Below, piece after piece: positions 33,901 through 57,639 of a stretch of 64,000 nucleotides of DNA (position 1 is the stretch's first letter; the number at the start of each line of letters is the position of its first letter). Origin of the DNA: Octopus sinensis (lineage: Eukaryota). The notes beneath the pieces were generated by a model. It ran no database searches. It was not told where the DNA came from and saw nothing but the letters and a program-made list of their open reading frames with translations. Location: NCBI RefSeq assembly GCF_006345805.1, contig NW_021832712.1:41422-105421 (forward strand), written 5' to 3'. Both the position numbers and the translations under genes were made by a program.

Positions 33901-34569
33901 TCAATCTATCATGGAAGGGTCCCGAAATTGTGGGGAAAGGTAACCAAGTTTTTTATTTGATAATCACAGCTTTATCCGTCGAAAAAACCGCTCGCTTCCT
34001 GGATTCGAGATCTTAATGCTCGTGTTCATCACTTTAATACTTGGACAGTCACTTCAAGGACCCCTACAATATTTTTGATCTCGGCATTTATTCACCCTAT
34101 CAGTTTTTTGACCGCTGTCCAGCAATCAAGTGCCCATACGCTCAATGTAGATCATTTTCTTGATTATTAGGTTCCTTTTGACAATTTGATCTCTGAATTC
34201 AACGTCCTCACGATTAGCGACAATGATGTAACAGGATCTCCATCAGAAGGAGTGTTGATCAAGGGGATCCACTTGCAAGGAGCAGGTTGGGACATTAAAA
34301 ACGCAAGTCTGGTGGAACCAGAGCCAATGAAGCTAATTTATAATATGCCTTCTGTACATTTGAAGCACTTGGAAGCAAAGAAGAAAAATTTAAAAGGTTA
34401 TATTCGTGTTTCTTGACTAGTAATTACAGGAATATACCAATGTCCTGTCTATATGACGTCCGATCGTGCTGAAATGCGGGTGTTTGTAATGGACGTTAAA
34501 AGTGGAGATAAAGCAGCCGACCATTGGATTAAAAGGGGAGCAGCAATGATTCTTAATCTTGATGATTAA
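18943..34569 (+). CDS. DNAH2: Axonemal dynein heavy chain, DNAH2 (inner arm I1/f beta) type, full length
   Basis: N-terminal VHWIKQIK..L and P-loops GPAGTGKT (25460s), [25 protein letters not shown]. The stalk coiled coil and C-terminus [16 protein letters not shown] resemble DNAH2 rather than DNAH10. Dozens of 23-32 nt introns. The start ATG at 18943 is inferred by splicing into ORF 19196. Confidence 0.9.
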
Positions 34570-34869
34570 ATAACACAATTTCCTAATAAATTGTTAGTTT
34601 AGTAATTTGTGTAAATATATTTTTAAACAAGATTTGAGTATATTTTATTCTAAACTTATCTAGAACATGACGAGAGAATAGTTAGAGAATCAGATAGATT
34701 GTAATCATGAATTAGTTTTTTTCACAGTTTGCCCATTGTGAATTAAGAGTATTTTTGAGAGACGATGCATTGATCGGCCAGAGTAGTGATAATATGTCTT
34801 TTTTTCTGGAATAGAGATTTTGTGGCATGAAATGATAGATTTGTATTTCGTGAAAAATTTGGAGTCCTC

Positions 34870-36330
34870 TCATCACCAGGTGGTCTTCAACCGGAAGGAT
34901 ATAAGATTCCCAATGAAGTTGATCGATGAAGTGGGGCTAGAACACCAGTTATTATGCAGAGCCCGAGTTTTTGATTCATAGGAGTTTTTGGAGATTTGAT
35001 AGAGACAGGTTCCATAACCATGAGATTGACTGGACGAGGCGGGGTCCGCAAGGGTCCTTCTGGACTTCAAATTTGAATGATAATAGATTTTTTCCAGACC
35101 ATAGGTATTAAACCACAGTTTAGCGATGTTTTGAAAATATCAGTCAGATTTTTTCAGATGGTATATGCAAAGACCATCGGGCCCAATTTTTTTCTACTAT
35201 TTCCTTGTTGAAGCATGGTTTTTGCATTTGGTGGGAATCCTTTCAGCACATATCTTTTATCAGCAGCTAATAGTGTTGATGTGAAGAATTAGATAGCGGA
35301 TTCCAGTGAGTTATGTCCTGACAGAGAAGCCTTTGAAGGCAACTTCAATATCTTGACGATGGGGGAACCATTTCCGGTTGTAATTGATTTAGTTCTTCGA
35401 AAAATGTCCCGAGGTGATAGAGGTAATTTAAATAAAATTGGATTGTGGCCTGATAGGAAATCATGAATCACTCACCAATTTATGCTAAGGCGATTGATGG
35501 GGGGCAGAGGGAAAAATCCGTTGATTGTATTAATGTCGTTTAGACCTTAGATCCACCTTGTGGTGTAAGTGTGGTTGTTCAATATGACTAGATTTTTCAG
35601 TTACGACATTATTGTAGGGTTTGTATTCCTTGGCATTGATTTGAGAGCCATGCTGAATTTTTTTGGCATTTAGGTCACCGATATCAATATATTTTTGATA
35701 GACATGATAGCTTGAATACCCACACCGTTGGTGAGAGAAAATTATTATTATTTTTTAATGCCAAACAGAATCACACGTTTTAAACCATTAACTAACACGT
35801 TCAGGTGATTCCGACACTTCTCAACAGTCGAGCCATCTTTTCACGAGGTCCGACCGTGACCCACACACTTTCTGTATGTACGGTGAATGGTTTGTGGTCC
35901 ATTTTTCACGATCTCCCCATTTGCCTCTACGAGAGACTCCAGTGTTCTATGGACATTTTCCCTATCGGTATGGTCCTTCATAGGTTGATAAATCTTTCTT
36001 GAATTTTTTCGATTTTTAGCCGGTTCGTTGCCGCCAGTCTTATAGCCCCAAGCAGCACATGCATAGCCTATTGTTGGCTCGAATACTGCTTGTAAAGGTC
36101 TCTACCCCTGGCGATAAGTTCTCCACATTTAAAGGAAGGCTTTTACAAATTAATCTTCTTTATACAGGTTGATACGATCTATTCTACGTGAGGTGAAAAA
36201 CAGAGGAAAGTATCAAACGTTATCCAATATCTTCTGTGTTTTCTTTTGTGTATTGGAATTCCGTTCACGTGAACATCAATAGTTTTCGTCCCCCATCTCC
36301 TATTTTTCGTGAATAGTGACTGCGACTTTT
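34870..36330 (-). mobile_element. Degenerate APE-RT LINE fragments (copy 1)
   Basis: The minus strand gives PTIGYACAAWG...KIQERFINL (post-RT), then APE remnants (..HNPILFKL), then GPDG..HLKNLTDIFKTSLNCGLIPMVWKKSII (RT N-terminus), with many frameshifts. Confidence 0.75.
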
Positions 36331-36744
36331 CGGAACATGCATGTGTGTGTGTGAGAGAAAATGAATGTATATCATGGAAATTTGCTCTATCTCTGAAAAA
36401 ATTTATGATTAATTTATTAAGTCTAAAAAAATTCTAATACTTATTTATTTGTTTATCAAATAATGATATAAAAAAATTGATATATTAGTAATACAGTTTC
36501 TCGTTCATCATGTAGTAATATTGGATGATCCCACAAATTCTTAGAATAGCGGGGGTCGTATCCGAAAAACAGAGTTTAAAAACAATCAATAAGAGTAATT
36601 TTTACCAAAAATATAATTTTAAATATTTTTTAATTAAAATATACTTTAAAATGTTTAATTTTAATTTGTTTTTTATTTTTATTAAAAATATTAATTAATA
36701 AAATTGTCTACATTTGTTAGTTAAGTAGATCGTGTGATAATAAT

Positions 36745-36990
36745 ATGGATCCGCCAAGTTATGAGGAAAATATTAAGATACAGTCAGCACCAAAATTGGA
36801 ACAGTCGAATCAGATCATATACGTGGTTTAGACGTCGATTTTTTAATTTAAGGTTTCTCCAGATGCGCAAAGATATTCCTTAAGAATATCCCGGAAGCAA
36901 AAAATATTGTATTTTGTAATCTTCATTTTGGGGTTCATTTCAATTATGACAATTTACATCCTTCGATCTAAAGGTTATGGCCCTTATTAA
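36745..36990 (+). CDS. PPSY-motif single-TM microprotein, paralog A copy 1 (71 aa)
   Basis: Removing one 30-nt GT-AG intron (36823-36852, which holds an in-frame TAG) gives MDPPSYEENIKIQSAPKLEQSNQIIY|VSPDAQRYSLRISRKQKILYFVIFILGFISIMTIYILRSKGYGPY*. Not in the ORF track. Confidence 0.65.
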
Positions 36991-37204
36991 CAATTTTTTC
37001 AAAAAAATGTTTTTTATTTTTTTTCATACACATTTCTTTATATAATCATGGCATACTTCATTAAAAATAAGCTATTAACTAGTCAGTTTCATCTTTGATT
37101 AGTAAACTCGACGCTATCCATATGCTGATATTCATTTCTTCCTTCAGGCATTCAGTCCTATTGCTCTCCGCATGTTGTTTATACCTGAAATTATTAAAAT
37201 TCAC

Positions 37205-37455
37205 ATGGAATGGAACCCCAAGTTACCAAGAAGTAACAATTAGATCCTACAAAAAACAATCCGACTCGTACAGTAAATGAACCAGTTTTATGTGATTCAT
37301 ATTTGTTTTTTATTTAAGATCCAAAATGATGACCAAGATCGCCTCATTTCAATGTATCAAGTGATTCGTCGATTTCTAATTGCGCTTTTTCTTCGCTGGT
37401 TTAGCTATTTGTGTGCTTTTTTTCTCACCGGTCAGATCGCTAATTTTGGTTGAAT
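37205..37455 (+). pseudogene. PPSY-TM microprotein paralog B, frameshifted duplicate of 56714-56969
   Basis: Near-identical to 56714-56969 but with several 1-bp indels (e.g. ATGGAACCCCAAG vs ATGGAACCCCCAAG). Some may be sequencing error. Confidence 0.5.
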
Positions 37456-37549
37456 ATATTGTCTATTTAAAAATCTCCTGTGATATTTTGAGCTTTGTCT
37501 GCGATTTATGCTTTTATTTTGAGTGGCAAAAATTACGAAAATTACGTAA

Positions 37550-38666
37550 AAGATTGTCTTTAACAGACTCTCTGGTCATATAGAGTCACAAAATTTGCTT
37601 TTACCCGAACAATGAGGATTTCGTGGAGGAAGATCCACAGGGGACTGCCTCAGGGAGTTAGAGCACCAATTATCCCGTGCTGACAGAAATGAAGCATGGC
37701 TAACTGTGGTGTGTCTGGATCTGGCCAAAGCCTTCGATAGCGTGTGGCACCTGGGCCTACTCTCCAGAATCCATGACATCGGAGCCGGGATAAAGACCTA
37801 TCGATGGCTGGAGAGCTTCTTGTCAGGAAGACAATCATTTGTCCGCTGTGGAAACCGCCTATCGGGGTGGTGGAACTTAGAAGGGGAGTCCCGCAGGGAT
37901 CTATCTTGAGTCCACTTCTGTTCAACCTCTTCTTGGCGGACATTCCTCTGCCGTCGACACGTACTGGCAAGCTCGTTATCTATGCTGACGATATCCTGGT
38001 CATGGATACCTCGAAAAGGATATCGCAGTCTTGGAGACGACTGAAATCATACATTGCAACGCTAAAGATGTGGACTATAGAGAAGGGTTTTGACCCTAGC
38101 CCGGAGAAGAGCACCATTTCATGGTTGCGGAGAGGGAGTCGCTATGCGGAGTCGTGTGCATATGCGATGAGTAGCTATGTGATGGATCTCCCGAAAAGCA
38201 AAAATCTTTCTTACCTGGGAGCAACCATCAACTGTCGTGGCTCATACGTAGAGCATATAGCAAATCAGAGAAAGAGGAGTGTGAGGATCCTCAAAAGCTT
38301 AACCATGTTCCATCTGGATCCGGAAACGTACATCTACGTATACAAAACGTGTGTGCAGCCAGTCCTCACATATGGCTACGAGGGCTGGTACGGTACGGAG
38401 GAGAGTGACTACCTGATCGAACAGTTGGAAAAGACAAGACGTTTCGCTATGAAATTGGCTTACGGAGTACAACTTGACGGAAGGTTAAAAGACTCACAAG
38501 AATCCTCTGTGCCCACGATCCGGATGGTCTTGGAGAATTGTCGTCAAACATGACTAGTATTGGGGATACGCATGGAAAGAGACACTTCGGTGCCTTGTTT
38601 TTATCTCCCGCCGATGATTTCTTCTTTGTTTTTCTTTGCTCAATAACACTATTCTATTCTATTCTA
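37550..38666 (+). mobile_element. 5'-truncated LINE (RT) insertion with TSD
   Basis: LDLAKAFDSVWH, GVPQGSILSPLLFNLF and YADD motifs (frameshift at ~37870). (ATTCT)3 tail at 38651-38665. TSD AAAATTACGTAA at 37538-37549 and 38667-38678. The empty site is visible at ~57045. Confidence 0.92.
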
Positions 38667-39148
38667 AAAATTACGTAATTAGAATTAAAATGTGGTTATA
38701 TAACTTGATGGAGTAACAAAATTTTAAGTGGACTTTTTTCTTTTCATATTTAATTCTAAAATATGAAGTTTCAATAATTTTTGTGATCATTTCGAAGATT
38801 TCCTTTAGTTCATCACCTTAGACAATTGTTTTTTAGTACAAAATAACTGGTATGAATGTTATTGATTCATTTAACTAAGGAAAATCGATCGTACAGCGGA
38901 TAACGATGAAGTTTTTTTTTAGGATACTTACTGAGATCCCGTAGAACAGCCATATCGTCTCTTCCTACTAGCCTTCGTTTTGAAATCATAATTCCGATCT
39001 CTCCAGGAGTGCCTTTGCCTTCTCACCAATGACACTACTTCTCAAACGCAACTAGAATAAATTTCACATTGTTCAGGAGAAAAGCGTCGATGTTGAAATT
39101 CGACAATGATTATAGCTCTATGATAACGGAAATATAAACCAATGTCAT

Positions 39149-40605
39149 AATATTGTTGTTTTCGCTCTGTTTCTTCCAGCAGTAATTACGGAACGTAAAA
39201 AATTCCTACAAATTGTTGGAATGTGCCATACCAATTTATGATGCGGACTTTGAGGTATATGATTGATACTTATGAAAGGTTGCCAATGAAATACTAATTG
39301 TTCACCTTGAAGAATATTCTACTACACCTTGGGAAGCTCTTAGACATTTGATCGCGGGAATAACTTATGGTGGTCACGTCACAGACGATTCAGACAGAAC
39401 CTTGCTAAATACGTACATAAATGAGTATTTCAACGACAACATTCTGACTCAAACGAACTATAAGCTGTCTTCTTTGCCGACATACTACGTACCAAAAGAC
39501 GGACCTCTTAAATCATATCACGAATATATCAACACTCTACCAAATAACGAACACCCAGAAGTGTTTGGACTACATCTAAATAGCGAATTCAGTCAGAAAT
39601 AACTGCTGCAAAACCATTTATTCTCCACTCTCCTACTGACAGAGTCTAAACAATCAGGAGACCATGACGACACGGGAGAGAGCAGAGTCCTTGAAAATAT
39701 CAAACTTATCAAAAACAAATTCAAAATAATATGACATTGAGGCTGCTCTGAGAATCCGTGAAAACGACAACTTTGTCATTGGTTCTGTGCTAGTTCAGCA
39801 GGTGAGGATCTTGGTTAATTTTATAAGGTCATCGGCTATAATAAATTGCTGGATATTATAGAACAACGGCACATAAAGTAGAAGAAGGCATTCTTGGTCT
39901 CATGTCAATGTCAACGGAATTGGAAGAGATTTTCCAGTCATCTATCATGGAAGGGTCCCGAAATTGTGGGGAAAGGTAACCAAGTTTTTTATTTGATAAT
40001 CACAGCTTTATCCGTCGAAAAAACCGCTCGCTTCCTGGATACGAGATCTTAATGCTCGTGTTCATCACTTTAATACTTGGACAGTCACTTCAAGGACTCC
40101 TACAATATTTTTGATCTCAGCATTTATTCACCCTATCAGTTTTTTGACCGCTGTCCAGCAATCAAGTGCCCATACGCTCAATGTAGATCATTTTCTTGAT
40201 TATTAGGTTCCTTTTGACAATTTGATCTCTGAATTCAACGTCCTTACCATCAGCGACAATGATGTAACAGGATCTCCATCAGAAGGAGTGTTGATCAAGG
40301 GGATTCACTTGCAAGGAGCAGGTTGGGACATTAAAAACGCAAGTCTGGTGGAACCAGAGCCAATGAAGCTAATTTATAATATGCCTTCTGTACATTTGAA
40401 GCACTTGGAAGCAAAGAAGAAAAATTTAAAAGGTTATATTCGTGTTTCTTGACTAGTAATTACAGGAATATACCAATGTCCTGTCTATATGACGTCCGAT
40501 CGTGCTGAAATGCGGGTGTTTGTAATGGACGTTAAAAGTGGAGATAAAGCAGCCGACCATTGGATTAAAAGGGGAGCAGCAATGATTCTTAATCTTGATG
40601 ATTAA
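39149..40605 (+). pseudogene. Duplicated DNAH2 3' fragment (intron-retaining)
   Basis: Near-identical to 33105-34569 including introns and stop codon. No 5' part; multiple 1-bp deletions. Confidence 0.9.
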
Positions 40606-42253
40606 ATAACACAATTTCCTAATAAATTGTTAGTTTAGTAATTTGTGTAAATATATTTTTAAACAAGATTTGAGTATATTTTATTCTACACATATTTAGA
40701 ACATGACGAGAGAATAGTTAGTTAACTACCCCGGCTTCTCTAGCAATTAGGAATCAGATAAGATGTAATCATGAATTAGTTTTTTCACAGTTTGCCCATT
40801 GTGAATTAAGAGTATTTTTGAGAGACGATGCATTGATCGGCCAGAGTAGTGATAATATGTCTTTTGTTTTCTGGAATAGAGATTTTGTGGCATGAATATG
40901 ATAGATTTGCATTTCGTGAAAAAATTGGAGTCCTCTCATCACCAGGTGGTCTTCAACCGGAAGGATATAAGATTCCCAATGAAGATTGATCAATGGAAGT
41001 AAGGGCTAGAAAACCAGTTATTGTGCAGAGGCATGAGTTTTTGATTCATAGGAGTTTTTGGAGATTTGAAAGAGACAGGTTCCATAACCATGAGATTGGA
41101 CTGGACGAGGCGGGGTCGCAAGGGTCCTTCTTGGACTTCAAAATTGGAATGATAATAGATTTTTTCCAGACCATAGGTATTAGACCACAGTTTAGCGATG
41201 TTTTGGAAATATCAGTCAGATTTTTCAGATGGTATATGCATAGACCATCGGGCCCAATTTTTTCTACTATTTCCTTGTTGAAGCATGGTTTTGCATTTTT
41301 GTGGAATCCTTTCAGCACATATCTTTTATCAGCAGCTAATAGTGTTGATGTGAAGAATTAGATAGCGGATTCCAGTGAGTTATGTCCTCCTACAGAGAAG
41401 CCTTTGAAGGCAACTTCAATATCTTGACGATGGGGGACCAATTTTCCGGTTTTAATTGATGATAGTTCTTCGAAAAATGTCCCGAGGTGATAGAAGGTTA
41501 ATTGAAATAAAAATTGGATTGTGGCCTGATGGGAGATCATGAATCACTCACCAATTTATGCAAGAGGCGATTGATGGGGAGCAGAGGGAAAGATCCGTGG
41601 ATGTATTAATGTCGTTAGACCTTAGATCACACCTTGTGTGTAAGTGTGGGTCGTTCAATATGACTAGATTTTTCAGTTACGACATTAGTTGTAGGTTTTG
41701 CTAGTCTTGGCATTGATTTGAGAGCCAGGCTGAATTTTTTTGCATTTAGGTCACCGAAGATCAATATATTTTTGATAGACATGATAGCTTGAATTACCCA
41801 CACCGTTGGTGAGAGAAAATTATTATTATTATTTAAGCCAAACAGAATCACCGTCTTAACCATTAACTAACACGTTCAGGTGATTCCGACACTTCTCAAC
41901 AGTCGAGCCATCTTTTCACGATGTTCCGACCGTGACCCCACACACTTTCTGTATGTACGGTGAATGGTTTGTGGTCCATTTTCACGATCCTCCCCATTTG
42001 CCTCTACGAGAGACTCCAGTGTTCTATGGACAATTTCCCTATCGGTATGGTCCTTCAGTAGGTTGATAAATCTTTCTTGAATTTTTTCGATTTTTAGCCG
42101 GTTCGTTGCCGCCAGGTTATAGCCCCAAGCAGCACATGCATAGCCTATTGTTGGCTCGATATACTGCTTGTAAAGGGTCTCTACCCCTGGCGGATAAGTT
42201 CTGCCACAGTTCCAAAGGAAGGCTTTTACAAAATTAATCTTCTTTATACAGGT

Positions 42254-44819
42254 TGTCACAGTCCGTTAGTGAAACACGCCGTTAATGAAACGCCAACATC
42301 AAATTGATAAAATCCAATAAAATTCTGTCAATAAAACCAACATACCCTATAAATTTGCGCTAACGTAACCTTGTTAGACATTTTATTAAAATTAGGGCTA
42401 GCCATTAATTTTTAATATTGCAAATTTATTATTTTTTTAAATTTATTAAAAATTTAATTTAATTAATCAATTTTAGATAATCTGGAATGATGAACTCCCT
42501 CGATTATCTCCCCATCTTCACTTTGGATCTTATATATATTGTTTGCTTCCTCCAAAACTCTAAATTTTCTTATTTCGACGCCATCAAACAGAGGAAATTT
42601 TCTTATGTTTGCATCGTTATCTTGTCTTGAAATTAAATTAAGACAAATTCAACCTTAATAATACCTTGGCTCCAATTTCAATGGATCCCTCGTCAAATCT
42701 CCACTTTCTTCGTTGCACCATTTTTTCACCAGCATTTATTAAATTGACGTATGCTTGTTCCCGAGCCTCATTGAGGTCGTCATCATATGAAAGGAGGCTT
42801 TCCATTGTGTCATCTTCAATTTTCCCTGGATTTTCCATTCCCATGAAGAGATAAAAAGGAACTTTCTTCGTCGTCGAGTGGACTGTATTGTTGTAGTCGA
42901 AAACAATGTCCTTAATACATTCAACGTATCTTCCAAAAAATCCATTTGATGCGCTAGTAGATGAAATCCATCGCTTTATACTTTGGTTAAATCTAATTAA
43001 GAAAATAATTAAAATACAACCTCTCCACTTGACCTTGTATCCACGGAGCTCTTGGTCGACCTCGTACGTGTTTAATTTTATATTTTTCGCATAATTTTTC
43101 AACATAAAGGTTGCAAAATTCTGTTCCATTATCCGTATGTAAAATTATTGGTGGGCCGATGAAATAAAATACTTTTTGAAATAATTCCGAAATTTCTTTT
43201 GATGTTTTAGTCATGGCAAGTTCGACAACGACATATTTAGAAAAAGAATCAATTATAACCAAAATCTACACTAAAATGACATTAATACCCATTTAAAGGA
43301 ATCATTGATTTCTGAATAACGTCGAAAGTCAATCAGATCTGCAATGTATCTGTCTCGACTCCTTCTCGCAATTATCGGGGTTATCGTTGGTTTTGTATCT
43401 CTCGCCTTGTGACTCCATAAATCAATCTTCTCAGTTTTGAGAATAAGCGGTCTCGTCCAAAGTGATTAAGATTATGTTCCGCCTAATTTATATTATTATA
43501 TTTCGTAAATTATACTTCAATAAATTTAAGCTTCAGCTCCAGTTCATCCTCGCAAAAAAAACGCAATTTTAGACCAGTCCTATTGTAGAATGCAACTCCA
43601 TTTTCAAATGTAAAGGATTCAGATAGTTTTCTGATTCTGAACCTTTCGAGGCGGCTCATGCTATCTGGAAATCCAATTTCTGAACTTTCCTCTTTGATAT
43701 TTCGAATAATACTGAGAATTGACAGTTTATAAGGTAAAGAAATCACTAATTAAGAGGCGGAACCGCAGCCGAGAGGAGGATCGAGGAACAGTTCCCCTTA
43801 GAACTGCGAGAGAGATGCGCTCAAAAAGCCACATCAGTTCACGGGGGTCGTTCCTCGCCCTTCCCAATGACCTTCCGATCTTCGAGAGGAAACGGAGAGT
43901 AGACGGGCCAAGTACACCGGAAGTTTCCACTGACACCGGTTCGAAGATGAAACGGTCCATCAGGGAGGCGTACTTAGATGCCTTCTTCGTCTCCGCCCTC
44001 TTGGCTGCTGAGCCAGCCTCGACCGCCGACAAGGAAAGACATGATGATGCGAAAGTATCAGAGCATGTCGCATCCCAGACGATTGCTTTCCCGTTCTTGT
44101 AGGGAAAGAGTGAGATCCCCGTCAGGTCTCTTACCATCCTCCTTAGAAGGCCAGGAGGCTCCAGCTGACAGGGAAATCCGGCTGCTTCAAGTGCATGTTT
44201 TACTACGGAATTTAATTCAGAATGCCTGGGAATCCGGCCAGGGCTTTTGCGACAGGAAAGTGGATGGAGACCTTTCCGATCTACGACAGAACCACAGCGG
44301 CAAGTGTGTGGAAAGCAGATGTCCAGACCAAGTCTAAGAGAAATGCCAATCTGCACACTTTTTGGGTCCAGCAGGGTTCCCGTATTTCCGGAAGGGTATG
44401 CGTTGAGCCAAGCGCCACTCCATTCGGAGGATGCGGCCAAAAGACAAGCGCGCCGGTGTTGATCACAGGAGGATAATAGCGAATTGTATAACTGAAGAAA
44501 CATTGTTTCCGTCCACGCCTTTGTATAGCAGGGATAGCAAGGAATGTCGAAGCCACGGGAAGACCAAACTTCGATACCATGAGAAAGCTCTTGGTCCAGA
44601 ACGGATTCGGATACTGAGAATTTCTTTAGTTAGTCTCACTATCCGCATACTATCACGCTTCTTAATTTAAACCATAAAAATCGGATTTTATTAAAATTAA
44701 TAACTAAATTATCTTTTCCAATGACGATTTGTAATTATTTATCTTTTTTTTGATATGATATTTTGTCAATTTGATGTTGGCGTTTCATTAACGGCGTGTT
44801 TCTTTATGGGACTGTGACA
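42254..44819 (-). mobile_element. Ginger2/Tdd-like integrase DNA transposon
   Basis: ~60-bp imperfect TIRs TGTCACAG...CTGTGACA and a 5-bp TSD CAGGT (42249-53, 44820-24); empty site at ~36160-36170. rve integrase VIIDSFSKY...LHTDNGTEF...GQVER with three micro-introns. Confidence 0.88.
43721..44610 (-). mobile_element. 5'-truncated CRE-like RLE retrotransposon inserted in the Ginger2 ORF
   Basis: C-x-C...H-x3-C zinc motif, PRH and VWDAT...KKASKY...PVSVETSG...RISLAVLRG. 12-bp TSD ATACTGAGAATT at 43709-43720 and 44611-44622. Removing the insert restores MRIVRLTKEILSIIRNIKEE. Confidence 0.9.
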
Positions 44820-45394
44820 CAGGTTGATACGATCTATTCTACGTGAGGTGAAAAACAGAGGAAAGTATCAAACGTTACTCCCAATATCTTCTGTGTTTTC
44901 TTTTGTGGTATTGGAATTCCGTTCAACGTGACATCAATAGTTTTCGTCCCCATCTTCATATTTTTCGTGAATAGAGTGACTGCTGACTTTTGGAACATGC
45001 ATGTGTGTGGTGAGAGAAAGTGAATGTAATATCATTGAAATTTGCTCTATTCTCTAAAAAATATTTATGATTAATTTATTAAGTCTAAAAAATTCTAAAT
45101 ACTTATTTATAAGAAATTTGATATATTAGTTAATACAGTTTTCGGGTCATCATGTAGTAATAGCTGAATGGTCCCACAAATTCTTAGAAATAGTGGTGGG
45201 TCGTATCCAAAAAACAGATTTTAAAAACAATCAATAAGAGTAACTTTTACCAAAAATATAATATTTTAAATATTTTTTTAATTAAAACATACTTTAAAAT
45301 TATTAATTTTAATTTGTTTTTTTATTTTGTATTAAAAATATTAATTAATAAAATTGTCTGCATTTGTTAGTTAAGTAGATCGTGTGATAATAAT

Positions 45395-45640
45395 ATGGAT
45401 CCGCCAAGTTATGAGGAAAATATTAAGATACAGTCAGCACCAAAATTGGAACAGTCGAATCAGATCATATACGTGGTTTAGAGGTCGATTTTTTAATTTA
45501 AGGTTTCTCCAGATGCGCGAAGATATTCCTTAAGAATATCCCGGAAGCAAAAAATATTGTATTTTGTAATCTTCATTTTGGGGTTCATTTCAATTATGAC
45601 AATTTACATCCTTCGATCTAAAGGTTATGGCCCTTATTAA
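45395..45640 (+). CDS. PPSY-motif single-TM microprotein, paralog A copy 2
   Basis: Same structure and length as 36745-36990. I see one intronic change and one Q>R change; the frame is intact. Confidence 0.65.
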
Positions 45641-46058
45641 CAATTTTTTCAAAAAAATGTTTTTTATTTTTTTTCATACACATTTCTTTATATAATCATG
45701 GCATACTTCATTAAAAATAAGCTATTAACTAGTCAGTTTCATCTTTGACTAGTAAACTCGACGCTATCCATATGCTGATATTCATTTCTCCCTTCAGGCA
45801 TTCAGTCCCATTTATCCAGTTCATCGTGAAAGATTTCACGTAGGCAAGTCTGTATCCTTACTCTTGACTTATCAACTGCAAAGGAACAATCGTGTCAAAT
45901 ATAATCTATCCTACTATAATGTATTCTATTATCTAGCTCAATGTTCCTTTTCTATGGAACAATTTTGTTTCTAAAAATACACAATTTTACTTCCTAGTCT
46001 GTTTTTAATTATCAACGACTGACTCATTCACGTTTATTGATCTTCTTTCATACTGGAA

Positions 46059-46375
46059 TCAATTCTCGTTATCGTTCCCCTGCCCGTGAGGCAATGAGTA
46101 GTCCTGGCACGACACAGTTGAAAAATGGGGATCTCTCACCTTCCTTCCGGTCTTAGCGAGGCGTTATGGGGTCCACCATGTCAGTTGGAACTTCCAATCG
46201 GATATGGAAACGCTCAGGAGGCACTTAATGCCTACCGAAAAAAGGACTTCTAGAACTCTGACCTTGGGACATCGTCGTCTCAGGCCGTTCATGTGGGCAG
46301 GATCGAACCTTTCAGTAGGATCTCCCTCGCTTGAATCGGGGATCACGGGGATTATAATAATTAACTGGCTTACCC
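46059..46375 (-). repeat. ~315-bp GC-rich dispersed repeat, copy 2
   Basis: Reverse complement of 5392-5707 with scattered substitutions and small indels. Confidence 0.8.
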
Positions 46376-46993
46376 GTGTTTAGTCTTTAAATAAAATAAA
46401 ATCTTCTTTACTTCATATACTTTGCATGAGTGCATCAAAGTTAGTGAAATCGGGACAATGTTCACTTTTTCGTGGTATATCAGCTCCAATTTCTAAGATT
46501 GGAAATCCCATTTTCTAAGTTTTTCGATCTCCACTTGAAACAATTTCGGACAGATTTTATCCCAACTTAGATCTAAAATATCATATTTTTTTATCGAAGA
46601 CAAATAAATTCGGTTAGTAATGCTGCAGAATTATATCGTCTTAATTAGATTTAAATAAATCAAAGTTAATTATACTTGAGTCAACCAAGGATGTCTTATG
46701 AAGCTGAAGGATTCTTAAAAATGTACTGCTTCTATTATTTCGTTTAAAAGCTAAAAAATCCTCTGCACAAGGCCGACCACGACTAAACTGCATTATTTTT
46801 CCATTATTTATTAGACCAATAAAACGGGGTAGAACAGTTAATTATAATCCCAGTGATCCCCGATGCACTTTGCAAGCGACGGAGATCTTTAGTATCGTAA
46901 AAACAAAAGTTGCCCTTCATTTTTTAAAATTATTTTTGAGTTTATTAATATTAATTAAAAATTTATTAAATTCTTATTTTTGTTGTATAATTA

Positions 46994-47763
46994 ATGGTCG
47001 GTGCATGTTTATTAAAGAGTTTTGCTGTGAAATCTTCAGAATATTATTTAAAGAGTTATAATTCACACATAGAAATAAATATAGAAATGCTAGAAGGTAG
47101 GGAATATTATACTCGAAAAGATATAACCGTTTGGTCACATTCAACAAAATATTATACCTGCAAAATCAACATAATAACAGAAATTGACACGAATGAGCTA
47201 CAAAAATTAGAGGCGATAGTTTTATTCTTTGATGATAAAGTATTTGCTGTATCATTTACTTATTATGAATCTTTTGAAAATGCAAGTATATTTCTATCAG
47301 AATTAAATCCTTCTATTAAACTTATATGCAGTTGTCAGAAATTAGATTCTTTTGATGCGAAAACTCGTACTAATAATTATTTTAATAACTTAAGAAACGA
47401 AAATAAAAGATTTTTGTTTCAAATCTCAGTGCGAATTAGTCGAAATGATACCTCTGGGGAATGAAGAGAGTTATGGAATTTCAAGGATTATTGAATCACT
47501 GTCAGCTCACAGATGGCCATGCTTAGAAATGAAAAAGGAGAGAAACAACTATAAATCTGATTTATTGATGGATGACGAATTGTTCTCTGATTTACGAGGA
47601 ATGCGAGGTCACTATTTATGTTTTTTACGGCAGAAAAGGCGATGAGTTTAGGGTTGGAGGAAAGACGAGATTTAGCAGAACAAGTATGGGTTTTTCTTTA
47701 TTTTAGGTGACTCTAAAAATATTTGGTTCATTAAATTTTGAAGATTCGGATGTCGAAGATTAA
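46994..47763 (+). CDS. AAGAB: Alpha/gamma-adaptin-binding protein p34
   Basis: W...TKYYTCKINI, EAIVLFFD, ESYGISRIIESLSAHRWPCLEMK and ELFSDLRGMR..AMSLGLEERRDLAEQ match AAGAB motifs in order; ends ...FEDSDVED*. Confidence 0.8.
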
Positions 47764-48035
47764 TTTAATATTTGTCTGTCAAATGTGAAATTGTTTTTAA
47801 CAAATGTAGTTAAATTAATAGACAGCTTAAACTACAGACTTTTAATGGATTGGTTTCTTGTAGAGAAAACAAATTGCGTTTTTTAGTTGTATTTCAAGTA
47901 TTTTTGGTTAACGCGTACTCACTGGGAGTTTAATAAACCGTGGTTCGTCATTCGAGGTCAGGATCAAGATATAAATATCTGAATTCTCTTGAAACAACAT
48001 CAACATTTTTTTAGTCTTTCCCAATGCCTGTAGAG

Positions 48036-50069
<2,034 letters not shown>

Positions 50070-50070
<1 letters not shown>

Positions 50071-50540
50071 ACGGTCAAAAATTAAAAAATAAATATTATT
50101 GATTTGAAATTTGAAAAATAAACATGTGATTCAAATTTTTCAGCACACTTTCCATGCCGATTTAATTTTTTGGTGTAAAAAATGAGGCTCTTCCTTTTTA
50201 TGCCCGCAACCACTGAAGGTCGCTTTTATATTGGAGGGTCGCATTTAAATGCTTTTTGTGGTGATTTGGCAGTACTATCCATATGGCCATGCGGCCATTT
50301 ACTATTTACTATTAAATTACAAGTAAAAAGCTAATCAATCACAGTTTTAGTCTGCTACAATATTTTAATCAATTCCTTAATCATTAGTTAATACTAGCAA
50401 ATTCTGTTTCTCATTTTCCCATTCTCAGTGACGTTTGATTCTGCTCTGATATTAGAATAAACGTTTCTTATCTGTATTCTCCGTTTGTGACGCGTGCCTT
50501 CTATTGACGATCGACTGACCACTCAATTCATGCATAATGG
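50070..50540. repeat. Old non-coding dispersed repeat family (other copies ~53400-53970, ~54030-54160, ~60255-60705)
   Basis: Shared blocks GATTTGAAATTTGAAAAATAAA, GCAACCACTGAAGG, TATCCATATGGCCAT and AGCTAATCAAT.ACAGTTTT.GTCTGCT, all in the same orientation. Confidence 0.75.
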
Positions 50541-50546
50541 AACTGG

Positions 50547-51135
50547 CCAAAAGCAAAGTGGGTCTTACCAAAAGCATAAGGCTATAAGAACTCAATCTTG
50601 AAATTTTATTTCTAATGAATTCCTTTTCATTAACAATTTCTTCAATTCGTAAATGCCATGGATCATTGTCTACTACTAGCACTGCTAAAAAATTGTGAGA
50701 TTCCCTTGCTTTTCGTAGACAAATTCTCATACATTAATGGGCAGATTCCTTATTAAAGGATCCATGTTTCAATTCATAATGTAACAATCCAAGAGATCAA
50801 GTTCCCTTCAGTCACCAATTCTTTATAGGCCAACCCATTTGAGAATATTCAGTCAGTATTCAAAGCTGACAAAAAACACATTGCAACAGACATTAAAAAT
50901 ATTTTGAATGGTGTGAAAAAAGAAGCTTTGTTAACTACTGAGTTTCGACTTCAAAAGTTATAAGAAACTATGATTAACTCTTTATGTATAATCACTCCAT
51001 TTTTATGCAACAACGTATTTGCAAGAATTCAAAGGTTAGTCTCATCTGTCTTAAATAATGATATGGTTTATTAAATAATTTTATTGTTTCACTTTGCGTT
51101 TGGTAAGACCCACTTTGCTTTTGGTAAGTTCCACT
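50547..51135 (-). mobile_element. IS630/Tc1-like transposase relic bounded by inverted repeats
   Basis: 28/29-nt inverted repeat (50547-50575 vs 51096-51124). The internal minus strand reads GLLHYELKHGSFNKE...VLVVDNDPWH...RLSSYSLML, like the DN..H / L.PYSPML motifs. Confidence 0.55.
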
Positions 51136-51442
51136 TTAAATCTGAAATGGTATAGATAGGGTTATAATTCTGTTTTGCGTTAGGTTTAAGTTTGTATTTT
51201 ACGCTATGCCTAATCTGTAAAATAGGAATAAATATATTTTTTTTATAAAATCACATTATTTTTGAAATTATTAACACCTCGAAAGCTCTGCACTTAGTTA
51301 AAAAAATTACTTAGTTAATTAGTTTCTTTTTTATCAATAAAGATTCGTGATTAAATAAAAAATGATTTTGAATAAGTTCGCGATTAACAGATTTTAAAAA
51401 ACACGTTAAAAGTTATGTAATTTGTATGTGTAACAAACATTA

Positions 51443-53174
51443 CAGTCCGACCCCCAAATGGGGCACCAAGTGCCCCAAAATGCGGGGGTGCCCCAAAAAC
51501 AGGGGTTTGTTATTTTTTTAAAAATTAAACCATTAATAAACATCAAAAAACATTTTTACTAAAATATTCAGTTATTTTCTTTTTATTTGTAGAGTTTTGT
51601 CTGATATTGTTCGTCAATTTCAGCCGAAAATCAAAAAAATCTCGGAGCATACTTGGTGCAACATTAGAAATTTTTTCTTCTAAATTGTTAAGCAGATCTT
51701 TTGTTTTTGCTACGACATTTTCACTATTTTCAATTTCTGAATATGTATCATAAACATTATTGTTCATGTCTTCGCATTCTCCATCAATTGTTTCGTTAAC
51801 AACTTGATCTAAATGTTCATCTGTTAGACAGTTTTTTGTTGCATAAGAATCACGGTTCCTGTCGATTTTCTTCCAACAATTAACAATACTTTTAGCATCT
51901 ATTTTCTCCCATCCTTTTGAAATTAGCATCATAACCTGACGCAAATTTAATTTACCAATAGAATGTGTAAAATCGTTTTCGAAATCTTGAAAACATAAAA
52001 ATTCCATTAAGAAAGAGGAATAATAATCTTTAAAAATCTTGATTATTCCCATATCCAAAGGTTGTAAATAGGGCGTTGTATTTTTCGGCAAAAATAAAAA
52101 TTCGATGTTCGAACATTCGGCAGTTTTATGGCATCCCGCATTGTCAAGTATTAATAATATTTTTCTGTTGTTTTTGCAAAACGATTCATTTATAAGTGTA
52201 AGCCAACTCATAAAAGTCTTTCCAGTCATCCATGCATTTTGAGAAGATGAATACAATAACCCAAAATCTTGAACATCAAAATTTTTTAGACACCGAGGTT
52301 TTTTATATTTTCCAATAATCAATGGATTAAGTTTTTCCCCGAATGTTCGAAGAACAGTGAGTCTTTCTTTCCCTTGTTTATAACCAAAACACGGTTCGCC
52401 TTGTTCAACAAATGATTTTTGAGGAGTTCTTTTTATAAAAAGCGCAGTTTCATCACAATTAAATATATTTTCAGGTCCATATTTTAATACTTTCTGGTCA
52501 TATTTTTCAAAATAATTTTTCACATAAGATAAATCACATGAAGCTTTTTCACCACATATTGACTTGAATTGAAGTTCATGCCGCAATTTAAATCTATCAA
52601 GCCACCCATTGGAAGCTTTAAAAGAAGTAAATCCAATTTTTGAAGCTGTAACTAAGGCAATTTTTTTCAAAATAGGGCCTGAAATCGGAATTTTATCTAC
52701 GCGTAGTCTTTGAAATATTTCAAAGACTTGATCATCAAATTTATCTTATCGGCTTTAAATGTGTCATATTCCTCAGAAATAGTATTGCCGTGTTGCAAGA
52801 AAGGTACAATATTTCGTTTTATTCTTGATATTGTTCCTTTACTTGTGTTGTACTTTTTCATTAGTTGCCTCTCAGATAAATTTTTCTTCAAAATTTCTTT
52901 AGCAATCTTCAATTTAGTTTCGTAATCCATAACCACAACAATAAAAATATAAATTGAAAATAAAACAAAAAATAATTAATTTATTATAATTTTATTTTAT
53001 TTTTAATTCCTTATAAATGATTTTATGGTGCCCCAAAAATTCCATAATTTTTTATCGATTTTTTTTTTTTCTGCCAAAATGTACTTTTGGAATAAAGTGC
53101 CCCAAATTGCGGGGGTGCCCCAAAATCCGAGGGTGCCCCACCCCTGGGGTCTGCCCCATTTTGGGGTCGGACTG
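51443..53174 (-). mobile_element. pogo/Tigger (CENP-B-like HTH + DDE_1) transposon, near full length
   Basis: TA|CAGTCCGACCCC TIRs at both ends with internal GGGGTGCCCCAAA repeats. ORFs 52697-52936 and 51543-52670 (FKASNGWLDRF, NCDETALF, ILDNAGCH, LQPLDMG) are joined by a frameshift at ~52745. Confidence 0.93.
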
Positions 53175-53184
53175 TATTTGTGTT

Positions 53185-53188
<4 letters not shown>

Positions 53189-53215
<27 letters not shown>

Positions 53216-53395
53216 CAGTAAAAAAACATAATTAGAAAGAAAAAAGTAAGCAATTGGGTGGCTAAGGGAATTGTCGAGGGCCTGAGGGTCAGCTCAACGA
53301 TGCCGCGCTGCGTATTGAGTGGCAGTTTCCGCGGAGCACAGCAACCGAGATTCGCTGGAACAGCCAGCTCGTCTCCCTCCGGTCGTTTGTTTTTG
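53189..53395 (-). mobile_element. Very short CRE-like 3' end with poly(A) tail
   Basis: The minus strand reads TNDRRETSWLFQRISVAVLRGNCHSIRSAASLS*, then a short UTR and a ~28-nt A tail (T run at 53189-53216). Confidence 0.8.
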
Positions 53396-54711
53396 TGGAG
53401 CTTGAATAATTGATTTGAAGTTTGAAAAATAAACTTCCATGCAAATTGAATTTTTGGTGTTAAAAAAGAGGCGTTTCCTTTTTATACCCCATGCAACCAC
53501 TGAGGGTTGCATTTACACACCCCCCTCATTTGTTTCCTTTGTTTTATTACCCGACTTTTCTAGCCTGTAGCATTTTACAGTAGAATGAAAGCAGGTTTTA
53601 TAAATTCTTATCCATATGGCCATTTGGCCAAAAGTAATTTACTTTAAATTATAAGTAAACAAGCTAATCAATGACAGTTTTAGTCTGCTCCAATATTTTA
53701 ATTAATTTGTCAATCATTAGTCAATTCTACCAAATTCTCTTCAACTTTTTCCCATCTTCAGTGACGTTTGATTCTGCTCAGATATTTGAATTAAGGTTTC
53801 TTATCTATATTCCCTGTTTTTGACTGCATGCCTTCTATTCATGATCGACTGAGCACTCAAGTCATGCATAATCATACTAAAAAGAAAAAAGCACTTTGTT
53901 TTTTTATCATTGCCATCAAGGGACCCAGTACAATGAGGTTGAAGAGCCCAATATTCACGACTATGTCACCAAACTTTAACTGAGTTAGAAAATTGGTGAC
54001 ACCAGTGCACGAAAGTTAAAAAAACTTAAAATAATTAATTTTAAGTTTGAAAAATGAACGCATTATCAAATCGTTTCATTGCAAATCGATTCTTCTGGCA
54101 TCAAAATTATAGGCTTTCCCGTTTTATGCCATACAACCACTGAGGATTGCATTTATTGTCGTCAAAACCGAATCCCTTTCATGGCCCGCAGCATTTCACA
54201 GTAGCATGAAAGTTTACAATGACAACAATTGAAATAAGAATAAAAAAATTTTTCGACATGTAAAGTAAGGGAGGAGATGTCAAGAGAGCATAGGTCCCAT
54301 TTAACAGTTCGTTCTTGACAAAGTACAGTACGCACTAAGAGGAGAGTCTTGTCATTGACCCCATTGCCCACATTATGAATGTGCCTATTCAGTGCTTCCA
54401 GCTCAGCCTTTCTTGCGGCTATCTTAGTTTCAATGTTTTCCTTTCACTTACTTTTTGACATAGGCTTTTGGGTTATTTTTTCATAGGTTGACTGTGGCGA
54501 GTAGAAATAGAGAAAAATGGTCTAGGAATGTTATAATGAATAATATTGTTATTATTCTGATTTCTAGGTGGAGTACACATCGACATCTTAGCCCGTTGCA
54601 TTAAAAATTTGGCATCGCGAAAGTTCATAAATAAAATTTTTACGTTCAAATCAAAAAATATTTTGTATAAAATCAGATTAAATACATTTGCTCTTGAATT
54701 TTTCAGATCTT

Positions 54712-54888
54712 TAAAAATCAAAAGTATTTAAATGAGACAGTGATTTCCGTTATTTTATATGTAACTAATTTTGTAAAAAAAGCTTAGTGTTCTGATATTT
54801 TTATCGCGAAATTTTATTATATAGATCGGGGACAGAATGCTGACGGTGAACGAAAATCAGTGTCTCATTTAAATACTTTCGATTTTTA
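54712..54888. repeat. ~35-bp inverted repeat pair, candidate MITE
   Basis: TAAAAATCAAAAGTATTTAAATGAGACAGTGATTT vs AAATCAGTGTCTCATTTAAATACTTTCGATTTTTA (2 mismatches), ~107-bp spacer. Confidence 0.6.
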
Positions 54889-55025
54889 TAATGTTCGGAC
54901 TATTGACTATTACTAAATCTCACGTTTATTTTGTTCAATAAAACTATTACATTAAACATAGTACATCTTTGTTTTAGAATCTTAATTTCAAAAAAAGATT
55001 TAATGGAAAAGAGATAGGAGGACTT

Positions 55026-55432
55026 CTAAACACAGCGAATTGCAACGCAATTTCCGGACACAATTGCCAAAGAAGACGGTGAAACAGCCAGATCGACTCT
55101 TTGGAGTCTTAAGTTCTTTTTGAGATGATGGAACCCGCAAAAAAGAAAAGTCACAGGCTTTTGCTTCGAGGATACAGTTGGTGTCAAAAAGAAATCTTCA
55201 CTAACGGCCCGGTATTTTACGATTTCCGATTTCTCGGCAAACTCGGAGGCAATCCGGGAAATGCAGACAGAGTGAACTAGATTATATTTTCCGAATAAGT
55301 CTACAAAAGTGATATCCCAGACAAGAAAATTGCTTTTTCGAAAAGAAAGAAGCGTCATTCCGTTCCCGAAATCTATTAGAACCACAGGCTTTAGAATAGA
55401 ACAAAGGCTGCTGAGTCAAGGGTTCTCTTGAA
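55026..55432 (-). mobile_element. Older CRE-like RLE fragment
   Basis: KRTLDSA..., GMTLLSF..SNFLVWDITFVD, FAEKSEIVKY, SLAIVSGNCVAIR. Interrupted by a ~90-bp piece similar to 59930-60010 (inverted). Confidence 0.65.
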
Positions 55433-55643
55433 AATATCGCTTAACACTCTCTTTTGTTTTATAAGATCGCTTGTGTATACAAAAATATTCAAGTATGTTT
55501 TGTTCAATTATTAATTTGTTTTTTTATCTATTAATTTCCAGGTAGAAATTAAGTCGTTATTTGTTTAGTAATCGTATGTATAATATTCCCAAAGTCAATA
55601 ATGCATTTCTGCTACATTTTAATAACAAAAAATAAATTAAAAA

Positions 55644-56215
55644 TTAGAATAAGTTCCCTTTGTCTTCTGCTTTTGAAATTACAGAAATGAACTCTGTAAA
55701 TTATTGAAGAAATTTAACCTTCGTAGTCAATGAATCCATCTTCATCTTCGTCCGCCTCATTCATTATTTGTTTTACTTCGTCTTCTGTCAGATTGTTTTT
55801 CAGCATAAGCATTGCGTCTTTCAGTTCTTGGGAACTAATCTTTCCGTCTCCATTTTTGTCAAACAGTTTGAAAATATTTCTATTTTCATCGTCAAAATCT
55901 TTCACAAGTAATTTCTTTGACATAAAAGTCAAGAATTCTGGGAATTCAATTGTATTACTTTCTAAATCATTAATGCTGCACAAAAACTGTTTTCGTCATA
56001 TTCTTTGATAAATTCTTCAAGTTCATGTTCTTTAAAACTTAGATTAATAGAATGCACAGCGCTTTGGAATTCTTGGAGAGTTATTTTTCCATTTTTATCA
56101 GAATCAAAAAAATTGAAAACTTGATAGAATTCTAAAATTTTTTAAATTCTTCAACCTTCTACCTCCTCTTCGGTTAAATTTTCGATCTATTATTAATTGG
56201 AATATAAATAACCAT
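55644..56215 (-). CDS. Calmodulin-like four-EF-hand protein
   Basis: ATG followed directly by an intron (as in calmodulin genes). EF loops DSDKNGKITLQE, DENESNTIEFPE, DKNGDGKISSQE, DEDEDGFIDYEE. Too divergent to call true CaM. Confidence 0.85.
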
Positions 56216-56713
56216 AATTCAAATTAAAAATGCGTTTTATAAAAATTGAATTAATAAATTACTATTTTTTTCAATTAATAGATAAAATTAGATTTAACAA
56301 ATTTCTCCGTAAATATGTAATATTACATTTTATATTATATGTAATTCATTTTAAGTCGATTTTGTCCTTCTGCTCATAAATAATTTTTTGTTATTCATTT
56401 TGATGCAGCTGATAATGACAATGTTAAAAAATGATTGTTTCTGATTTTATTTTTTTATTTCTTATAAAACTTGAATCTTTTAGGATTATGAAAAAAAGCA
56501 ATTGTCTAGAATTTTCCAAAACATATGACTAAATCTTCCGTAACTTTGTAACTTGCTGATAAACAAGTAAGTATAAATTTAAAATTAAAAATCATTAAAA
56601 ATTACTTCAGAAATTTTATATTTAATTATATAACTTATTTAAATAAAAAATTGTGGTTTCATTTTTTGTAAACTTTCAATTTGTTGTTTATACCTGAAAT
56701 TATTAAAATTCAC

Positions 56714-56969
56714 ATGGAAATGGAACCCCCAAGTTACCAAGAAGTAATTCAATTAGATCCTACAAAAAACAATCCGACTCGTACAGTAAATGAACCAGTT
56801 TATGTGATTCATATTTTGTTTTTAATTTAAGATCCAAAATGATGACCAAAGATCGCCTCATTTCAAATGTAATCAAGTGATTCGTCGATTTCTAATTGCG
56901 CTTTTCTTCGCTGGTTTAGCTATTTGTGTGCTTTTTTTCTCACCGGTCAGATCGCTAATTTTTGTTTGA
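56714..56969 (+). CDS. PPSY-motif single-TM microprotein, paralog B (75 aa)
   Basis: Removing a 28-nt intron (56804-56831) gives MEMEPPSYQEVIQLDPTKNNPTRTVNEPVY|IQNDDQRSPHFKCNQVIRRFLIALFFAGLAICVLFFSPVRSLIFV*. An extra 3' exon cannot be excluded. Confidence 0.62.
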
Positions 56970-57639
56970 AAATATATTGTCTATTTAAAAATCTCCTGTG
57001 ATATTTTGAGCTTTGTCTGCGATTTATGCTTTTATTTTGAGTGGCAAAAATTACGTAATTAGAAATTAAAATGTGGTTATATAACTTGATGGAGTAACAA
57101 AATTTAAGTGGACTTTTTTCTTTTCATATTTAATTCTAAAATAATGAAGTTTCAATATTTTTTTGTGATCATTTTCGAAGATTTCCTTTAGTTCATCACC
57201 TTAGACAATTGTTTTTTAAGTACAAAATAACTGGTATGAATGTTATTGATTCATTTAACTAAGGAAAATCGATCGTACAGCGGATAACGATGAAGTTTTT
57301 TTTTAGGATACTTACTGAGATCCCGTAGAACAGCCATATCGTCTCTTCCTACTAGCCTTCGTTTTGAAATCATAATTCCGATCTCCTCCAGGAGTGCCTT
57401 TGCCTTCTCACCAATGACACTACTTCTCAAACGCAACTAGAACAAATTTCACATTGTTCAGGAGAAAAGCGTCGATGTTGAAATTCGACAATGATTATAG
57501 CTCTATGATAACGGAAATATAAAACCAATGTCATAAAGTATTAAAATTTTCTTTTAGAATACTCAAGTAAAAATTGACCACATTATTTGTGGTAAAGTGT
57601 GGTTAGTACATCCACAATAAAATACATCCGTGTATTGCT

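Follow-up and report, generated by a model that had tools for sequence, protein, structure and literature searches.

Putative tandem micro-intron genes for tail-anchored PPSY-motif microproteins in a repeat-rich region

Can stretches of DNA that appear only as fragments in a list of open reading frames (ORFs) encode a set of small membrane proteins? The question is raised by a 64,000-nt stretch of contig NW_021832712.1 (assembly GCF_006345805.1, positions 41,422 to 105,421), referred to here as the window. An earlier reading, made from the letters and an ORF list alone (the sequence-only reading), described within it two paralogs, A and B, each interrupted by one micro-intron and each encoding a microprotein with an N-terminal PPSY motif and a C-terminal membrane helix. 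We re-derived the gene models, compared them with controls from the same DNA, and searched for relatives. The results suggest that A and B are probably protein-coding paralogs, and point more tentatively to a role as membrane-anchored recruiters of ubiquitin ligases.

Gene models and paralogy of A and B

Gene models were obtained by removing a GT..AG micro-intron from each locus and translating the remainder. Re-reading and splicing reproduced all of the coordinates and sequence features that had been given for A and B. The spliced product of A1, the first copy of A, has 71 amino acids (aa), with MDPPSYEENIKIQSAPKLEQSNQIIY before the intron position and VSPDAQRYSLRISRKQKILYFVIFILGFISIMTIYILRSKGYGPY between it and the stop. 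The second copy, A2, differs from A1 by 2 nt, one of which is intronic while the other gives Q32R, the sole coding difference. The intact copy of B, B2, yields 75 aa (MEMEPPSYQEVIQLDPTKNNPTRTVNEPVY before the intron and IQNDDQRSPHFKCNQVIRRFLIALFFAGLAICVLFFSPVRSLIFV after it), or 73 aa from a second ATG at 56720 that aligns with the start of A. The shared M(D/E)PPSY(E/Q)E start is present as MDPPSYEE in A and MEPPSYQE in B, and both products contain the basic patch and hydrophobic C-terminal helix ascribed to them. The D.QR motif is found in A1 and B but not in A2, where Q32R gives DARR.

The intron of A is 30 nt long and reads GTGGTTTAGA(C/G)GTCGATTTTTTAATTTAAG; that of B2 is 28 nt long and reads GTGATTCATATTTTGTTTTTAATTTAAG. 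As had been claimed, both introns begin with GTG, lie in phase 0 directly behind a Tyr codon and share their 3' end. The final 13 nt, TTTTTAATTTAAG, are identical and contain a YTRAY-like TTAAT. Both introns hold in-frame stops, so that the plain ORF list gives only fragments of A and B; this bears out the explanation offered for their absence from the ORF track. Alternative in-frame donors occur 3 nt further 3' in A (36826 in A1), giving a 27-nt intron and 72 aa, and at 56798 and 56786 in B. Introns of 28-30 nt are nothing unusual in this genome: the final 4.5 kb of the neighbouring axonemal dynein heavy-chain gene contain ~18 junctions joined across GT..AG introns of 24-32 nt, as has been described for Dicyema (PMC13644364). 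The dynein micro-introns have very degenerate 5' sites, some of them starting with GTG, and several end in AAG.

An ORF restored by a micro-intron is not in itself beyond chance, because such ORFs are frequent. A control of 49 kb of strand yielded 39 ORFs of 70-120 codons that start with ATG and are rescued when one GT..AG segment of 22-35 nt is taken out, a rate of ~0.8 per kb per strand. The comparison of A with B was more discriminating. BLASTP aligned the two proteins over 65 aa at 31% identity (E 2e-5). None of 5000 whole shuffles attained their local alignment score of 58; when the hydrophobic block was fixed in position, 6 of 5000 did. The N-terminal soluble parts alone scored 55, a value reached in 0 of 5000 shuffles. 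Translations in shifted frames scored just 20-34, which indicates that the similarity is tied to the proposed reading frame, not simply to the DNA.

Other features of the alignment are of the same kind. The introns occupy the same column (behind Y26 in A and Y30 in B) in the same phase. Of 60 aligned codons, 35, 19 and 40 differ at positions 1, 2 and 3, respectively, and in a frame-agnostic nucleotide alignment the identity at these positions is 59, 73 and 50% (chi-square P = 0.027). Six of the 20 identical residues are encoded by different codons, including both P and Y of PPSY. Among the 39 control ORFs, one contained a 19-aa window with a Kyte-Doolittle (KD) hydropathy of at least 2.5, and none had a tail-anchor layout. 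Taken together, the frame-specific score, the common intron column and phase, the conservation of codon position 2 and the rare hydrophobic C-terminus argue that A and B are probably two diverged protein-coding paralogs.

Two further measures were set aside. Codon-usage log-odds, trained on 2330 dynein codons and applied alongside 127 intergenic control ORFs, are uninformative for short hydrophobic proteins and did not separate A and B from the controls. The identity of A1 and A2 was rejected as a sign of purifying selection, since the next 172 non-coding nt and a dead dynein fragment are equally conserved.

Predicted architecture and known PY-motif proteins

The best 19-aa KD window scores 2.58 in A (residues 44-62) and 2.57 in B (residues 51-69), and is followed by a tail of 9 and 6 residues, respectively. 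The N-terminal parts of both proteins are hydrophilic. AlphaFold, supplied with a three-sequence alignment, returned a helix at residues 40-65 with a predicted local distance difference test (pLDDT) score of ~87-91 and an N-terminus of low confidence. A basic patch precedes the helix (RYSLRISRKQK in A and KCNQVIRR in B), and more basic residues flank the helix on its N-side than on its C-side. In silico, both proteins thus have the single transmembrane (TM) segment within ~30 residues of the C-terminus that characterizes the tail-anchored class, and they are predicted to combine a disordered cytosolic N-terminus with one C-terminal helix. The tail-anchored layout inferred by the sequence-only reading is strengthened by the KD windows, the AlphaFold helix and the lack of this layout in the control ORFs.

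The PPSY motif lies at residues 3-6 of A1 and A2 and 5-8 of B2. It fits the class-I WW ligand core, [LP]PxY, and falls in the low-pLDDT, predicted disordered segment. In paralogs that are otherwise this divergent, the extreme N-terminal M(D/E)PPSY(E/Q)E is the best-conserved block, and the conservation of PPSY is consistent with a functional, cytosol-exposed class-I WW-domain ligand. The QSAP sequence noted earlier is indeed present in A (IQSAPK), but the aligned segment of B is LDPTKN and, lacking the first Pro, QSAP does not qualify as P(S/T)AP. The suggestion of a late-domain link to the endosomal sorting complex required for transport (ESCRT) was accordingly dropped, as nothing supports a connection to TSG101.

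Searches for relatives of A and B returned no family. A1, A2 and B (from both starts) were absent from a collection of 15 billion proteins by exact look-up, a word-indexed homologue search with A gave no candidate, and hmmsearch with an A+B profile gave 0 hits at E <= 1e-3 among 1.84 billion representative proteins. However, the word-indexed search with a 211-aa dynein ORF also found nothing at E <= 1e-20; with no close relative of the dynein in that collection, neither the failure to find homologues of A and B nor the label 'unannotated' says much about near relatives. When metagenome and viral contigs were scanned with back-translated patterns, 67 and 40 pattern matches resulted, of which 0 were confirmed. 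In Pfam at E <= 10, the only matches, to Fung_rhodopsin (E 0.005, below the cut-off) and to RELT (E 0.63), fell on the hydrophobic helix. A profile search of the PDB gave the helices of KCNE1 and the AT2 receptor at E >= 0.17, which is not significant. The same Pfam scan showed no significant profile match to CD225/dispanin, SMIM or other named small-TM families.

Two known families were examined more closely. In LITAF and CDIP1, PPSY(EE) and P(S/T)AP motifs in the N-terminal region are followed by a membrane-embedded hydrophobic stretch; PPSY ahead of a hydrophobic stretch is also the order in A and B. The LITAF membrane region, however, is a zinc-bound monotopic hairpin in which two CxxC knuckles flank ~22 hydrophobic residues, whereas Cys is absent from A and occurs in B as two isolated residues. 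With no CxxC in either protein and no Pfam match at E <= 10, membership in the LITAF family (zf-LITAF-like, PF10601) was rejected. LITAF is endosomal and was formerly thought to be tail-anchored (PMC5095921). CYSTM1 is small and tail-anchored, its N-terminus is rich in Pro/Tyr and includes PPxY-type motifs, and where it has an invariant VYVVE..RR ahead of the helix, A and B have [IV]Y[VI]..D.QR. Its defining Cys-rich helix (CLTACWTALCCCCLWDMLT) is absent from A and B. The sequence behind this lead was confirmed as CYSTM1; profile-profile comparison against 20 CYSTM1 sequences (hhalign) then rejected membership in CYSTM (PF12734), aligning 11 columns that lie outside the helix at a probability of 0.5% and E 0.12. 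The sequence-only reading had recognised no family and no LITAF Cys domain, and had named a clear hit to CYSTM1, PRRT/dispanin or SMIM as one outcome that would count against it. The Pfam, profile, PDB and CYSTM comparisons agree with it on both points.

The most instructive comparisons are with proteins that recruit ubiquitin ligases through PY motifs. NDFIP1/2 and Bsd2 are cellular membrane proteins that, by means of PY motifs on their cytosolic side, recruit and activate NEDD4-family ligases at endomembranes (cited in PMC5849660). This PY-based recruitment is the mode proposed for A and B, but NDFIP and Bsd2 exceed 200 residues and have three TM helices and two or three PY motifs. A and B, with one hydrophobic segment, one PY motif and no Pfam match, do not belong to this group. 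Proteins that combine a tail anchor with a PY motif and bind Itch/NEDD4 form an established class; those of herpesviruses bind Itch/NEDD4-family ligases via PY and relocalise or deplete them (PMC5849660). Herpes simplex virus UL56, varicella-zoster virus ORF0, human cytomegalovirus UL42, human herpesvirus 6/7 U24 and murine cytomegalovirus m42 have PPxY in a cytosolic N-terminus and a single TM segment at the extreme C-terminus. The architecture described for the UL56/ORF0/UL42/U24 group (PMC5849660) is also that of A and B. By contrast, the members of this group are viral and have one or more PPxY, whereas A and B have a single PY motif and host-type micro-introns and lie in a host-type locus beside a cellular dynein gene. 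No sequence kinship with the herpesvirus PY proteins was detected in Pfam at E <= 10, in the 1.84-billion profile search or in the viral-contig scan. Overall, the herpesviral proteins are the closest architectural and mechanistic analogues, the likeness being one of design and not of detectable ancestry.

Duplicated block, rival explanations and proposed role

Self-comparison of the window sequence revealed one unit present twice in tandem, as U1 and U2 (Table 1). The unit comprises the dynein 3' end, intergenic DNA, A, B and ~0.5 kb more, with A and B spaced 215 nt apart. The earlier count of two paralogs in four copies therefore stands as to the paralogs but not as to four independent copies, these being one duplicated block in which one copy of B is broken. 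What had been called a family amounts to two genes of this block; tblastn and a motif scan of the window found no member besides A1, A2, B2 and B1. Between 33105-36171 of U1 and 39149-42255 of U2 the ratio of indels to substitutions is unusually high, with 52 indel events against 76 substitutions. Most of these indels are 1 nt long (46), and 32 lie in homopolymers. The high ratio suggests either strong slippage mutation in an AT-rich genome or residual long-read errors. U1 and U2 are possibly two haplotypes that the assembler placed in tandem instead of a true duplication; in either case the independent loci are two, A and B.

Table 1. Coordinates of features in the window
Feature	Position	Strand	Description
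A1 exon 1 (predicted)	36745..36822	+	encodes MDPPSYEENIKIQSAPKLEQSNQIIY
A1 micro-intron (predicted)	36823..36852	+	30 nt, GT..AG, phase 0; in-frame TAG inside
A1 exon 2 (predicted)	36853..36990	+	VSPDAQRYSLRISRKQK, TM helix ILYFVIFILGFISIMTIYI, LRSKGYGPY, TAA
A2 (paralog A, copy 2)	45395..45640	+	exons 45395-45472 and 45503-45640; intron 45473-45502; 71 aa
B1 (damaged paralog B)	37205..37453	+	six frameshifting exon indels relative to B2
B2 (intact paralog B) exon 1 (predicted)	56714..56803	+	encodes MEMEPPSYQEVIQLDPTKNNPTRTVNEPVY
B2 micro-intron (predicted)	56804..56831	+	28 nt, GT..AG, phase 0
B2 exon 2 (predicted)	56832..56969	+	IQNDDQRSPHFKCNQVIRRF, TM helix LIALFFAGLAICVLFFSPV, RSLIFV, TGA
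Duplicated unit U1	33105..39150		dynein 3' end, intergenic DNA, A1, B1, insertion of a long interspersed nuclear element (LINE)/reverse transcriptase (RT)
Duplicated unit U2	39149..57536		frameshifted partial dynein 3' copy, terminal inverted repeat (TIR) transposon, A2, 10.9-kb insertion, B2
Truncated non-LTR (long terminal repeat) retroelement, U1 only	37545-38665		RT ORF 37804-38553; target-site duplication (TSD) ~10-12 nt, AAAAATTACG...; ~90 nt downstream of B1 stop
TIR DNA transposon, U2 only	42256-44818		TIRs TCACAGTCC...GGACTGTGA; TSD CAGGTTG
10.9-kb insertion in U2	45813-56681		ends 32 nt upstream of B2 ATG; separates A2 from B2
Axonemal dynein heavy-chain gene	~19000-34566	+	closest solved relative human DNAH2, E 9e-43
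Partial second dynein 3' copy in U2	39149-40602	+	98.5% identical to 33105-34566

Judging from its sequence, B1 is a pseudogene. All six frameshifts that distinguish it from B2 lie in B1, and the conserved 3' block of its intron bears an A>T change. A can polarise three sites, namely the PP codons, CAAAGAT and TTAAT in the intron, and at each of them B1 has the derived state. The location of the frameshifts and derived changes on B1 fits B2 having stayed under constraint. Sequencing error was considered as the cause of the damage, given the many 1-nt homopolymer indels, but is less likely because the dynein exons of U1 are frame-intact and U1 and U2 hold different TSD-flanked insertions of transposable elements.

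We tentatively read A and B as lineage-specific tandem genes for tail-anchored PY-motif microproteins that may recruit a WW/NEDD4-type ligase, and place somewhat less than even confidence in this reading as a whole. Several results weigh against it. Only two independent loci carry all of the support, and B is fragile: B1 is dead, and the 10.9-kb insertion leaves B2 just 32 nt of the ancestral upstream region. When ranked from the top among intergenic ORFs by codon usage, A falls at percentile 26 and B at percentile 51. Near-identity between A1 and A2 extends through the 172 nt of downstream non-coding DNA and matches the 98.5% of the dynein fragment. No homologue of either protein was found among the 1.84 billion representative proteins, a 5.8-billion clustered set, the PDB, Pfam or the metagenome and viral contigs. 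Finally, only two residues separate the PY motif from the N-terminus, an unusually short distance for a WW ligand. Much of this would suit non-coding intergenic DNA that was duplicated locally long ago and is open by chance, and whose motifs were picked by eye: codon usage that is not gene-like, homologues found nowhere among the collections searched, a broken B1 and a B2 deprived of its upstream region, A1/A2 conservation no higher than that of flanking non-coding DNA, and a background of 0.8 rescuable ORFs of 70-120 codons per kb per strand. Such a duplication would not account for the frame-specific similarity of A and B (58 versus 20-34) or the bias of conservation to codon position 2, nor for the retention in both of start, intron position and phase, stop and a helix of KD >= 2.5 (1 of 39 controls), nor for the occurrence of every frameshift on a single copy of B. 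We consider it rather unlikely, though far from negligible, that A and B are not genes.

If A and B are genuine tail-anchored microproteins, PPSY could still be something other than a NEDD4/WW ligand, and the proteins could have another function, partner or stability signal, for example as pump or channel regulators (regulin- or KCNE-like) or as stress proteins in the manner of CYSTM. Their tiny size and single C-terminal helix are common to many unrelated micropeptide regulators, [IV]Y[VI]..D.QR echoes the VYVVE..RR of CYSTM1, the PDB search gave weak profile matches to KCNE1 (E 0.17), and the position of the PY motif so near the N-terminus also agrees with this alternative. However, PPSY and its flanking acidic residues form the most conserved block of A and B and fit [LP]PxY exactly; the likeness to CYSTM extends over 11 columns at an hhalign probability of 0.5% and lacks the Cys-rich helix, and the KCNE1 matches are not significant and are confined to the hydrophobic helix and its flanks. 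Another function is unlikely, if still to be reckoned with. We regard as quite improbable that A and B are decaying remnants of a once-functional gene pair in a repeat-rich, rearranging region, intact in appearance but no longer expressed. They do sit among nested duplications and insertions of transposable elements, B1 is a probable pseudogene, B2 is cut from its ancestral upstream sequence and A2 has the derived Q32R at a residue shared by A1 and B; yet none of A1, A2 and B2 bears a disabling mutation, and the splice-signal block is intact in these three open copies and mutated only in B1.

According to the PY-adaptor reading, A and B would each be transcribed, relieved of one ultra-short spliceosomal intron and translated into a tail-anchored microprotein of 71-75 aa. 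The C-terminal helix would be inserted post-translationally in the endoplasmic reticulum/endomembrane system, leaving 6-9 residues in the lumen and the disordered N-terminal 40-50 residues facing the cytosol. There, M(D/E)PPSY(E/Q)E would act as a class-I WW ligand and bring a WW protein, most plausibly a HECT ligase of the NEDD4 family, to the membrane. The recruited ligase might ubiquitinate neighbouring membrane cargo or, alternatively, be titrated or sequestered, much as is seen with the NDFIP/Bsd2 adaptors and herpesvirus UL56, ORF0, UL42 and U24.

If this reading is correct, A and B would represent a minimal cellular PY-motif adaptor, with WW ligand, linker and tail anchor in ~70 residues, and a compact, tool-like module for the study of NEDD4 recruitment to membranes. 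They would also illustrate how easily small ORFs with ultra-short introns are overlooked, since a plain ORF list hides them. If A and B are not real, they offer a caution for AT-rich genomes with 24-32-nt introns, where each kb of strand can yield, on paper, ~0.8 ORFs 70-120 codons long through the removal of a GT..AG segment.

Source genome and neighbouring features

Myxozoans are not known to have cilia. The window has a G+C content of 34%, and inspection of translations identified transposon ORFs of metazoan type (Tc1/mariner-like, pogo-like, reverse transcriptase and LINE-tail). Among animals, introns of less than 30 bp are found only in myxobolid myxozoans and Dicyema (PMC13644364). In the genome of D. 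japonicum, the G+C content is 36.7%, repeats make up 49%, and the genes for dynein and actin are multi-copy (PMC6736024). The G+C content and high repeat content of the window fit those of D. japonicum and also point to a dicyemid. Sub-30-nt introns occur here together with an axonemal dynein, and for this reason the sequence is most likely that of a dicyemid mesozoan and not of a myxozoan.

Dicyemids have ~30 cells and feed wholly by endocytosis. A and B could consequently tune the ubiquitin-dependent sorting of surface transporters or receptors, and the adaptor, if real, would stem from one of the most reduced animal genomes. That A and B are animal counterparts of the herpesviral PY proteins, and represent an unrecognised class of ~70-aa orphan NEDD4 adaptors or decoys that arose in dicyemids, is a conjecture by analogy that we think unlikely to hold in full.

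The partial dynein copy in U2 has several frameshifts in its large exon (39276-39976) and is either a pseudogene fragment or poorly polished sequence. Elsewhere, a 2.95-kb stretch of the dynein gene (21284-24234) is repeated at 61055-64000, 39.8 kb downstream, with 99.4% identity. The repeat begins mid-gene and continues to the end of the window, and represents either a larger-scale duplication or assembly redundancy. Between B2 and this second dynein stretch lie exons of a homologue of actin-related protein 3 (Arp3) at ~58800-59730 on the plus strand, with E 9e-15 to solved Arp3 chains.

An Rfam scan of the window gave no match. The TIR transposon at 42256-44818 bears minus-strand ORFs, including a G+C-rich ORF of 258 aa at 43727-44503. 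A pogo/Tigger-type (DDE) transposase ORF lies at 51543-52670 on the minus strand, within the 10.9-kb insertion between A2 and B2, and a Tc1/mariner-type ORF lies at 6793-7362 on the plus strand; both were named from their translations only. A satellite array at 15758-17601 consists of ~19 copies of a 95-nt unit with 94% matches, and inverted copies related to this satellite occur at 12344-12562.

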